NCBI GenBank assembly: GCA_964035545.1
Contig: OZ037773.1
Span: forward strand, 3,191,751 to 3,255,750
DNA length: 64,000 nt
Origin: Bugula neritina
Taxonomy: Eukaryota; Animalia; Bryozoa
Reading direction: 5' to 3'
This document shows positions 14,853-17,800 of the stretch, piece by piece. A program made the position numbers and the translations under genes. How positions within the stretch are numbered: position 1 is the stretch's first letter; each line of letters opens with the position of its first letter. The notes beneath the pieces were generated by a model that did not search any database, was not told the DNA's origin, and saw only the letters and a list, made by a program, of their open reading frames with translations.

Positions 14853-17800
14853 CTAACTTCTGATGTTTACATAAGTTTGCCCGGAGAGCACTCCATGGTT
14901 ATCTGTATTGGCGGTTTGTCCATCAGATATATCTAGTGAGTTATAGTTGTGACCATCCATTCTACTGACAGACATATCTGTGTATGGGGAGTTATCAGTC
15001 CTATTGACAGACATATCTGTGTATGGGGAGTTATCAGTTCTAGTGACAGACATATCTATGTATGGGGAGTTATCAGTTCTAGTGACAGACATATCTATGT
15101 ATGTGGAGTTATCAGTCCTAGTGACAGACATATCTATGTATGGGGAATTATCAGTTCTAGTGACAGACATATCTATATATGGGGAATTATCAGTCCTGGT
15201 GACAGACAACTCTGTGTATTGGGAGTTATCATTCCTAGTGACAGACAATTCTGTGTATGGGGAGTTATCAGTCCCAGTTCCAGCCTGTGACCTAATTCCT
15301 TAAAGAAAACAAGACAAGCCAGTTTTATTTTGCAACTACTTTTTGAATTGCGACCTCAAGTGTGATTGTTACATAGTATAAAGATGTTAAAACCATTATT
15401 TTATAACGTAAATTTATCAATCTATAATAACACCTTTTAGATTTCCAAGATGAAATGCTACTCCAGCTGTGATGATAAGTAACAGACAACCACCAGCTAA
15501 TCCTCCTCCCAGAGCAGCTTTGTCTATGCTCCCAGATGATGGTTTTTCAGAAAGAGTCGAAATCGGGATTGTGCTTGGTAGCATGATAGAACTATCCCAC
15601 TTTATTGTCCATGTAATAGTAACTGATTTGGCTGCATAATAAAAGCAAAATTATTATAATAAAACAGATCTTTCAATCACACTATTAATAGTTTTTGATA
15701 ATAAATAGTCTCAGATCATCACAATTAGTACCATATAGCTGGGTTAACTCTCTAATTTAAGTTGTATGACATTGTTATTAAAAGGAAAGTATCAAAATTT
15801 AAAGAAGTGCATATATATAAATTGTCACCAGTGGTGCAATTCAAACAATTTCTTACATAAACCATTTCCAGCTGCGCATGAAACTGTGTCTGTTAAACCA
15901 TCTGTTTGAGAATTCAAACCCAGCTCATCAGATGATCCTATTAGCAAAACTCCATTATATGTCCAAGTGAAGGTTGAGAGTGGTGGGTTAGCATCTACAT
16001 GTTGGCTACAATCTAGTCTAGCATCAGATTGACTTGGGTTGTACTCTTTCATGATTGGATTTTGAACACCTGGTCTCTTAGCCAAATCTGCAGTGCATCA
16101 ATATAAAAATGTTGAAATTAATAAGTTTATCAGGCGTTTTATATATATGATCTTTAATTTCATTTATACATGCATGTACTAAAAGTGAAGGGTCTATATG
16201 ACACTCACACTGTGGTGTGATAGTAACATTTCTTTCAGTGTTTCCTCCCTTCCAGTTAGAATGTTCTGTATCTGTACAGGATAAAGTTAGTCCAGCTCTG
16301 TCTGTCTCAGTAGGAGTATACTTTCCAGCCACTGCTTTGCCATTTACTTCTGTACATTATTAATATATCTGTATTTTTTAAACATCAACATTGACAAGAA
16401 AAACATCGAAGAAAAAAGTGTTTAGTTCTAAGTTTACAAGTTTCTTAACATAACAACATAATATGAGCTTAATATGTTAATACTACATATAGCATTTACA
16501 AGATGACAACACTCTCTCTCAATGCTATATACCATATACACTAATTTATATTCTCAGCTTACTGCTGCACAGACAAGGAATCTAAAACCATTAGTTTAAT
16601 TCCATAAGATTAAAAATCAGAAGACATATTTAGAGCTTTACTCACTGTATTCATAGACTGACACAGGATTTGCTCCTGTAGAGTTACAACCAAAAGTAAA
16701 TTCTTCTCCTTCTATGATGTTTTCTGGTTTATTGAGTGATATACTATTTGGAGCCGCTGTTGAATAAAAATTAGACTACATGCAAAATATATTTCAAGTT
16801 AAAGAGTCAAATAAAGTAAAAACAGTAATTGCTAATACTTATACTTAATGTCTTGGCTTATATGTGATTATATTATAACCATAATACCATTATACCATAA
16901 ACCATTATACCATAATAATTTTGAACTTATAGAATAATATATTTTAAGATATTACCTTTGACTTCCATTGAAACTTCTGAGGAAAGAATTTCTCCCACAC
17001 CTCCTCCTTCAAACCCTCTACAGTAGAACTTCCCTCTGAGTGTTGAATCTGTTACAGTGAGTTGTACAGAAAGAGTGAACCTTTCAAGTTTACCAACTAA
17101 GTTACAGTATGCATTACTGACTCCAGGTCCTTCTATTCCAGAGACAGTAGTAATATCTGGGTTTGACGATCCTTCCCATACTGTGTCATCCTCGGAACTT
17201 GGAGCACATCCACTTTTGTAGATTGTACTGCCTCCATCAGCTTCATATTGTAACCGTAAAGATTTTAAATCAGTATAACCAGCTGCTTTACATGTAAAAG
17301 TTATCTTCTCATTTTTATAGAAATCTCGTGAAGTTGTAGTACTGTAGTTTATCTCTGTAGATGGTTGTGCTAGAAATAAATAATAACAGTTCAATTTACA
17401 AATGAGACCTCTATAATACTGTGTACCAATATATATATATATATATATATATATATATATATATATATATATATATATATATATATATATATATATATAT
17501 ATATATATATATATATATATATATATATATATATATATATATATATATATATATATATATATATATATATATATATATATATATATATATATATATATAT
17601 ATATATATATATATATATATATATATATACACATATATATATTAATATATATACATATATTTATATATATTCATACATATATATATATTTGTATATATTA
17701 ATATATTTTTATATATTTATATATATGAACATGAATTTTTATGTGCTGAAAGGCGAGAGTTAAGTAACAGACAACCACCAGCTAATCCTTCTCCCCCAGC

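Follow-up and report, generated by a model that had tools for sequence, protein, structure and literature searches.

The receptor gene cluster and the terminal exon of gene B

A 64,000-nucleotide stretch of the Bugula neritina genome (GenBank assembly GCA_964035545.1, contig OZ037773.1, positions 3,191,751 to 3,255,750, forward strand), hereafter the window, was analysed, with emphasis on the terminal coding exon of a receptor gene (gene B) at positions 14853-15298 of the window. The window DNA is AT-rich (~30% G+C), with numerous microsatellites, and carries a tandem cluster of lineage-specific immunoglobulin-superfamily (IgSF) type I receptor genes, named A to F in this study. The receptor genes encode, in order, a leader, a V-set domain, a C2-like domain (once or twice), a membrane-proximal immunoglobulin (Ig) domain, a stalk with a transmembrane (TM) helix, and a cytoplasmic tail. 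The TM helix, the phase-1 Ig exons, the leader exons and the V-set fold together identify the encoded proteins as type I IgSF receptors with the layout V, C2, (V, C2), IgC, TM and tail.

The terminal exon of gene B (minus strand) encodes the entire cytoplasmic tail after the juxtamembrane residues GNLK. It runs from the acceptor ...tttctttaag|GA at 15298 to the stop codon TAG at 14853-14855, which are exactly the limits given in the initial annotation of this sequence. The acceptor aag|GA is of phase 1 and identical in all four paralogues A-D. The exon upstream of the tail carries the TM helix, which is trailed by K/R, and then G-N/K-L-K; in gene B this stalk and TM exon lies at 15434-15631 (minus strand), with a 24-residue hydrophobic helix at 15447-15518 and a phase-1 donor AAAAG|GT. 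Poly(A)-like signals were found 140-153 nucleotides past the stop codon in all four genes A-D. The TM exon is joined to the tail exon in the same way in two B. neritina gene models from another assembly (...AFHLGKLKGIRSQA...TDNSPYTEL), here called P0001 and P0002, which are AUGUSTUS models for which transcriptome hints were used according to the genome paper (PMC7576161).

The tail of gene B begins with GIRSQAGTG, followed by two 13-amino-acid units with SxYxEL motifs (L-units; 15195-15272) that jointly form YTEL-x9-YTEL, a string resembling either an immunoreceptor tyrosine-based activation motif (ITAM) or a pair of immunoreceptor tyrosine-based inhibition motifs (ITIMs). Six TDNSxY[I/T]DMSVxR units with YxxM motifs (M-units; 14961-15194) represent the expanded part of the array. 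They are followed by a degenerate 13-amino-acid unit with HNYNSL (14922-14960), which is in register with the repeats and has a homologous unit in gene F, and by ...QTYVNIRS and the stop codon. The terminal YVNI (14862-14873), of the YxN type, agrees with the Grb2-type SH2 consensus as a string match. From the first tyrosine through HNY, a tyrosine occurs every 13 residues (residues 15, 28 and so on to 119).

At 14962-15278, Tandem Repeats Finder identified a 39-nucleotide array with 8.1 copies and 91% matches; in the rest of the window it detected this unit only at 5128-5288, 31420-31697 and 37607-37751. The tail exon is therefore an in-frame 39-bp minisatellite, each unit of which, T-D-N-S-x-Y-x-x-[L/M]-S-x-x-R, adds one tyrosine motif. 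The head-to-tail units lie inside a reading frame that is open in four paralogues of the window and at two further B. neritina loci. The 39-nucleotide array, the open frame and the TM exon upstream bear out the earlier proposal of a coding minisatellite in a receptor cytoplasmic tail, and we have very little doubt that the repeat-built structure is real and well defined. Plus-strand open reading frames (ORFs) crossing the repeat were considered as a second gene and rejected as repeat artefacts, since the repeat contains few stop codons.

Tyrosine motifs in the tails of the paralogues

Translation of the minus strand confirmed the unit counts proposed earlier, namely 2, 6, 5 and 2 YxxM units after two SxYxEL units in genes A, B, C and D, for a total of 4, 8, 7 and 4 tyrosine units, respectively. 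As a string match, these putative YxxM docking-site motifs are placed 13 residues apart from tyrosine to tyrosine, within the roughly 10-15 residues that would suit bidentate p85 binding. The tail exon of gene A (5019-5308, minus strand) encodes two YxEL and two YxEM units, and its motifs (translation of 5019-5309) are SPYTEL, SLYTEL, SPYIEM, SPYTEM, HNYDSL and TYVNI. The corresponding motifs of gene B (translation of 14853-15299) are SPYTEL, SQYTEL, SPYIDM (twice), STYIDM, SPYIDM, SPYTDM (twice), HNYNSL and TYVNI. The tail exon of gene C (31311-31717, minus strand) encodes two YxEL and five Yx[DE]M units and equals an A-type tail plus a 117-nucleotide B-like block; its motifs (translation of 31311-31718) are SPYAEL, SLYTEL, SPYIDM (twice), SPYTDM, SPYIEM, SPYTEM, HNYDSL and TYVNI. 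The tail exon of gene D (37482-37771, minus strand) encodes two YxEL and two YxxM units (YTDM and YTAM), with the motifs (translation of 37482-37772) SPYTEL, SLYTEL, SPYTDM, SPYTAM, HNYDSL and TYVNI.

Every tail from A to D is closed by the degenerate HNY[DN]SL unit followed by ...GQTYVNI[KR]S and the stop codon, and the 13-amino-acid register from the first tyrosine through HNY[DN]SL, together with the terminal TYVNI, was found in all four genes as the initial annotation described. The gene models P0001 and P0002 have two L-units and two M-units each. This 2+2 arrangement is present in 4/6 tails, and QTYVNI is invariant in 6/6. The tail of gene F (approximately 51273-51480, minus strand) follows a different TM exon and contains one YKEL unit, then GDHNYECI and a terminal YEIP.

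Conservation of the repeat units

A total of 31 units, 23 from window genes A-D and eight from the two other B. neritina loci, were used for the comparison of positions. Numbered from the tyrosine, asparagine at position -3 and serine at -2 were found in 31/31 units. Tyrosine was kept in all units except one (30/31), the exception being SPHTDM in P0002. Position +3 is restricted to leucine (12 units) or methionine (19 units), and serine at +4 and arginine at +7 (R/K) are each found in 29/31 units. The variable positions are -1, +1, +2, +5 and +6. The order of the units is fixed, with L-units as units 1 and 2 and M-units after them in 6/6 tails from two genomes.

The core residues are kept through synonymous codons, namely AAC/AAT for asparagine, TAC/TAT for tyrosine, TCC/TCT for serine and AGG/AGA/CGG for arginine. 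Units 3-8 of gene B differ from one another by 1-3 nucleotides, and the changes spare D, N, S, Y, D, M and S. Unit 1 shows 0-2 nucleotide differences across all six tails, while the flanking introns are ~80% identical. The ratio of nonsynonymous to synonymous substitution rates (dN/dS) of the whole tail is 0.25-0.6, no higher than that of the folded V and IgC exons in pairwise comparison between paralogues (0.16-1.0). This ratio and the synonymous variation at kept residues indicate that the tail is constrained. No single SH2 consensus is as long as the constrained pattern, D-N-S-x-Y-x-x-[LM]-S-x-x-R.

Change in the number of units

Comparison of genes A and C suggested how the number of units changes. 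These two genes share 99.2% identity in the intron preceding the tail and 94% in the 3' flank; within the shared exon parts, 12 of 291 nucleotides differ (~96% identity). The length difference between the two tails is one in-register block of 117 nucleotides (three units), best placed directly after unit 2. Units C3-C5, which make up this block, match B3-B5 at 94% identity, and the units on either side are identical between the genes (C2 = A2, C6 = A3). Similar mosaics were seen elsewhere: gene D resembles gene C minus its middle units, with D3 nearest to C3 and D4 nearest to C7, and units 3 and 4 of the tail on contig L001 of the other B. neritina assembly are similar to C3 and B5, respectively. 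The clean block and the unit mosaic support in-register unequal recombination or gene conversion among neighbouring tandem paralogues as the process that altered unit number, in keeping with the unequal crossover of a 39-bp unit between paralogues that had been proposed.

The YxEL unit is probably ancestral, as gene F holds a single YxEL-type unit, and a single T-to-A substitution (TTG to ATG) in it probably gave rise to the M-unit. The tail of gene F may be the pre-expansion form. Among sequencing runs, the locus was strongly matched only by a DNA run that is probably from the source specimen; the other runs, among them 'symbiont metagenome' runs of 2016, yielded short unitigs of 92-97% identity that are inseparable from paralogues. 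No insertions or deletions in multiples of 39 nucleotides were found in these runs. Metagenomes were also scanned, once with a profile of the tail and once with a degenerate DNA pattern of the M-unit, and yielded no further tails.

Motif assignment and proposed signalling mechanism

The initial annotation had read the first two units as ITIM-like, the expandable units as putative PI3K docking sites and the terminal YxN as a Grb2 motif. At the level of strings this assignment stands, since all of them match published consensus patterns: SPYTEL and S[LQ]YTEL behind the TM helix agree with the broad ITIM pattern (I/V/L/S)xYxx(I/V/L), given that serine is allowed at -2. The inhibitory character of the pair did not hold up as well. 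The L-unit pair reads YxxL-x9-YxxL in 6/6 tails, with the nine-residue spacing noted earlier, and this equally fits the ITAM definition Yxx[I/L]x(6-9)Yxx[L/I] that was applied to Hydractinia Alr tails in a paper that also quotes the ITIM consensus (PMC9546547). The fit is at the upper limit of this wide definition and fails the canonical x6-8. Serine at -2 occurs in all units, including those with YxxM, and is therefore a feature of the unit, not an ITIM signature. A fixed inhibitory ITIM pair is therefore no better supported than one activating ITAM.

Phosphorylated YxxM is bound by p85-type SH2 domains, and by Drosophila p60, and phosphorylated YxN is bound by Grb2; these SH2 preferences were reportedly worked out by Songyang et al. 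in 1993/1994. At least two closely placed YxxM motifs engage both SH2 domains of PI3K adaptors in PDGFR-beta (Y740/Y751, which are 11 residues apart and form a bidentate p85 site), CD19, CD28/ICOS, IRS/Chico and the C-terminal extension of the Drosophila insulin receptor. Such vertebrate and Drosophila docking sites are unique sequences, not minisatellite units, and each gene has a fixed number of them. The tandem ITIMs of vertebrate receptors are typically 20-30 residues apart.

The explanation towards which we lean, by a small measure, is a tail that works as a multivalent docking strip. Clustering of the receptor by ligand would lead to phosphorylation of the tail tyrosines by a Src-type kinase. 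The YxEL pair would then bind a tandem-SH2 protein (Syk/Shark if it is an ITAM, SHP-2/Csw if the motifs are ITIMs), adjacent phosphorylated YxxM motifs, 13 residues apart, would bind both SH2 domains of a class IA PI3K adaptor, and phosphorylated YVNI would bind Grb2/Drk. Bidentate p85-type binding, by the parallel with PDGFR-beta, would account for the observed minimum of two M-units. The invariant N(-3) and S(-2) suggest an additional reader on the N-terminal side, either kinase specificity or, given the invariant N-x-x-Y, a PTB-type NxxY reader. With 2+2 as the ground state, the valency of the PI3K-type branch, and hence its gain, would depend on how many YxxM units are present. The parts of this explanation differ in strength. 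That the tail tyrosines are phosphotyrosine docking sites has roughly the same modest standing as the explanation as a whole; PI3K as partner of the M-units is a tentative assignment in which we place less trust; and it is doubtful that unit number tunes the output in living colonies.

Weighing of the alternatives

Several points weigh against this explanation and the tuning by unit number within it, and the first concerns the integrity of the two genes with expanded tails. Although the tail ORF of gene C is open, no leader exon or distal V exon was found in the 1.7 kb upstream (searched stretch 35804-37480), and its proximal V exon (33698-34099) contains an in-frame TAA where gene A reads TTT, together with a 3-nucleotide deletion relative to A. 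Gene C, one of the two expanded tails, is therefore probably a pseudogene; in-frame skipping of the defective exon is possible, as the Ig exons are of phase 1-1. In gene B every exon is open, but the internal stalk and TM-like exon (...GLAGGCLLL; within 17429-17916) has a helix that is cut short and reaches a stop next to an (AT)n array of about 300 bp (stretch 17429-17629). Gene B, which is rearranged or fused, looks like two 3-Ig genes joined together, with the leader of the downstream gene missing. With expanded tails only in the probable pseudogene C and the rearranged gene B, the valency that is functional may be limited to 2. Of the rheostat between paralogues that had been proposed, the difference in unit number stands; its functional side is weakened by the state of genes B and C and by the prevalence of the 2+2 form. 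Furthermore, the loss of tyrosine in SPHTDM and a dN/dS of 1.47 between the tails of A and C indicate that the constraint is not absolute. The motif matches are short and the consensus patterns loose: YxxM with threonine or alanine at +1 also suits the SH2 preference of Csk, and both YxxL and YxxM fit the YxxPhi pattern. Lastly, the sequencing runs with pieces of the locus included no RNA run and provided no splice joints.

The same observations bear on the possibility that repeat number is neutral, a disordered tail tolerating expansion and contraction, with only the basal 2+2 set or some of the tyrosines being of importance and the 5- and 6-unit tails being by-products of decaying or rearranged genes. 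The missing leader and distal V exons and the TAA in gene C, the degenerate TM exon adjoining the (AT)n array in gene B, the 2+2 form in most tails and the elevated A-C ratio are all in its favour. However, the six M-units of gene B retain all core residues, their differences being synonymous or at variable positions, the exons of gene B are all open, and the phase of the Ig exons would let the defective exon of gene C be skipped; neutrality is on balance rather unlikely. A little more probable, though clearly less so than the multivalent strip, is a tail that is wholly activating or co-stimulatory, in which the YxEL pair forms one ITAM for a Syk/Shark-type kinase and YxxM and YxN serve as amplifiers of the CD19/CD28/DAP10 kind. 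The x9 spacing is exact in every tail and within the definition applied to the Alr receptors (PMC9546547). The S(-2) residue is not particular to the L-units. The 13-residue distance is also shorter than the 20-30 residues usual for vertebrate ITIM pairs. On the other side, x9 is outside the canonical ITAM spacing, the upstream acidic residues are limited to a single D at -4, and binding of Syk/Shark is a prediction from the spacing.

Two further alternatives give the motifs other readers. As YxxPhi sorting signals for AP-2 mu2, rather than phosphotyrosine sites, additional copies would mean faster endocytosis or lysosomal delivery. YTEL, YIDM, YTDM, YDSL and YVNI all match the consensus of a tyrosine, any two residues and a bulky hydrophobic residue, but conservation reaches past it (D-4, N-3, S-2, S+4, R+7), a generic hydrophobic position leaves the strict order of L before M unexplained, and tandem arrays of sorting signals are unusual; we regard this reading as improbable. 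Slightly more improbable still is that a non-PI3K SH2 protein such as Csk reads the YxxM units, in which case the expandable part would inhibit Src-family kinases. The preference of the Csk SH2 domain, reportedly pY-[T/A/S]-x-[M/I/V] in the work of Songyang et al. of 1994, agrees with threonine or alanine at +1 in 10/19 M-units (YTDM, YTEM, YAEM, YTAM). The remaining 9/19 have isoleucine at +1, which is better for p85-type SH2 domains, and an acidic residue at +2 is not preferred by Csk.

Relatives and comparison with known systems

A word-index protein search with the tail found only two fragmentary B. neritina hypothetical proteins, EB796_020209 (P0001) and EB796_002991 (P0002). The contigs that carry them, L001 and L002 (GCA_010799875.2), can be aligned to the window at about 75-88% in exonic as well as intronic sequence. 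Some sequencing runs containing pieces of the locus are labelled 'symbiont metagenome', in agreement with the well-known symbiosis of this bryozoan, and the window is therefore attributed to B. neritina or a sibling species of that complex. Among 1.84 billion representatives searched with the tail profile, only the B. neritina cluster was found at E<1e-10 (E = 1e-51), and 13 weak matches were rejected as homologues as they are unrelated repeat proteins. Pfam gave only sub-threshold, meaningless matches on the tail, and the V exon matched nothing but uncharacterised fragments from JGI metagenomes. Look-alikes of P0002 in the ESM Atlas (SCIMP, C1orf162 and single-pass adaptors of the vaccinia A36R type) all scored <=0.81 and were kept as a lead only, not used as evidence. 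By these searches, the receptor family appears to be lineage-specific at the sequence level and essentially unannotated.

We know of no molecular description of immune or allorecognition receptors in bryozoans, a colonial phylum. The closest concepts come from other clustered IgSF receptors. Like the genes of the window, the Alr genes of the Hydractinia allorecognition complex belong to a colonial invertebrate and form tandem arrays of lineage-specific IgSF type I receptors with pseudogenes, in which every Ig-like domain has its own exon, the membrane-distal domain is V-set-like and the tails contain ITAM and/or ITIM strings; unlike the tails studied here, those of Alr are diverse, with neither a tandem-repeat construction nor YxxM arrays reported (PMC9546547). 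Botryllus fester co-receptors (FcoR) are likewise IgSF receptors of a colonial animal with several tail tyrosine motifs, and the motif balance among alleles and isoforms is read as activating/inhibitory tuning; there, alternative splicing and point substitutions (ITIM versus hemITAM) bring it about, whereas here the number of 39-bp repeats differs, and the term YxxM is absent from that paper (PMC12582321). Homology of the ectodomain or tail to Alr or FcoR was not found, and the resemblance is functional only. The KIR/LILR genes of the leukocyte receptor complex are also tandem IgSF receptors subject to unequal crossover, with paralogues differing in the number of tail tyrosine motifs; their differences arise through gene copy-number variation, hybrid genes and truncations, not through an intra-exonic repeat (PMC2816608, PMC3894450).

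In concept, the receptors studied here belong with Alr, FcoR and KIR/LILR, while bacterial effectors offer examples of tyrosine motifs that are encoded by repeats and vary in copy number. In Helicobacter pylori CagA, the EPIYA phosphotyrosine motifs lie in tandem repeats; recombination alters the number of repeats, with which the binding of an SH2 protein (SHP2) is considered to scale; unlike the present tail, CagA is an injected effector that mimics host substrates and has segments of 34-40 amino acids, whereas here the receptor is the animal's own and has two motif classes in fixed order (PMC5591203). In a literature search, no animal receptor tail was found described as a repeat-encoded tyrosine-motif minisatellite, which is not proof of absence. 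Chlamydia Tarp also carries tyrosine motifs in repeat segments. An unrelated 1226-amino-acid RING-finger protein (P0005) has long PEY[VA]DMS and EYASVS repeat arrays with many YxN motifs and represents a convergent, repeat-built multi-tyrosine docking protein.

The tails form a natural valency series of 1, 2, 5 and 6 YxxM units behind a fixed YxEL pair, which makes the relation between docking-site number and signal strength testable. If the multivalent docking tail proves true, it would be an animal-receptor counterpart of the repeat-encoded motif arrays in bacterial effectors, and the cluster would add a further independently evolved set of clustered IgSF receptors with ITAM/ITIM-like grammar beside Hydractinia Alr, Botryllus FcoR and the vertebrate leukocyte-receptor-complex genes. 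A more far-reaching suggestion, which we consider quite unlikely, is that the cluster is a bryozoan self/non-self or immune receptor complex in which the hypermutable 39-bp repeat gives colonies alleles differing in YxxM number and signalling gain. Such allelic variation would amount to a germline 'gain knob' on an innate receptor, so far undescribed for an animal receptor.

Ectodomain exons and other features of the window

Leader exons were located for genes A, B, D and F, and the Ig exons are of phase 1-1 throughout. The map of ectodomain exons is modular across genes. In gene B (all on the minus strand) the ectodomain exons span 15828-20469, with the leader near 20469, V-like exons at 19815-20219 and 16957-17361, IgC-like exons at 18112-18366 and 15828-16085, split C2-like domains, and the degenerate internal TM-like exon at 17715-17916. 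The exons of gene A, with its leader at ~10018 (minus strand), are intact, and the leader of gene D is at ~42314 (minus strand). Pfam matches on the ectodomain were to Ig_3 only and weak. The structure model of a 135-amino-acid V-like exon showed a V-set Ig fold with a mean predicted local distance difference test score (pLDDT) of 75.6, and its best PDB matches were antibody VH and nanobody domains (TM-score 0.5-0.6). Besides the canonical B- and F-strand cysteines (FTC...FYC), each V-like exon, for example 16957-17361, has a second conserved cysteine pair (SGC...[AD]C). The residues between this second pair differ among paralogues, and dN/dS reaches 1.0 for some pairs of V exons.

Gene F (51273-54776) is a 3-Ig member of the cluster (leader, V, C2 and IgC) with a TM helix unlike the others. 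Gene E is a remnant consisting of two V-like exons (48203-49103) with several in-frame stops and no other exons close by. Between genes B and C (stretch 24422-29826), an ORF of 704 amino acids on the minus strand has no Pfam match at E<=0.01 and is retroelement-like by eye, with a YRDD motif and a GIY-YIG-like C-terminus; inverted and partial copies of it are present at 26175-27476 (plus strand) and 29233-29826 (minus strand).

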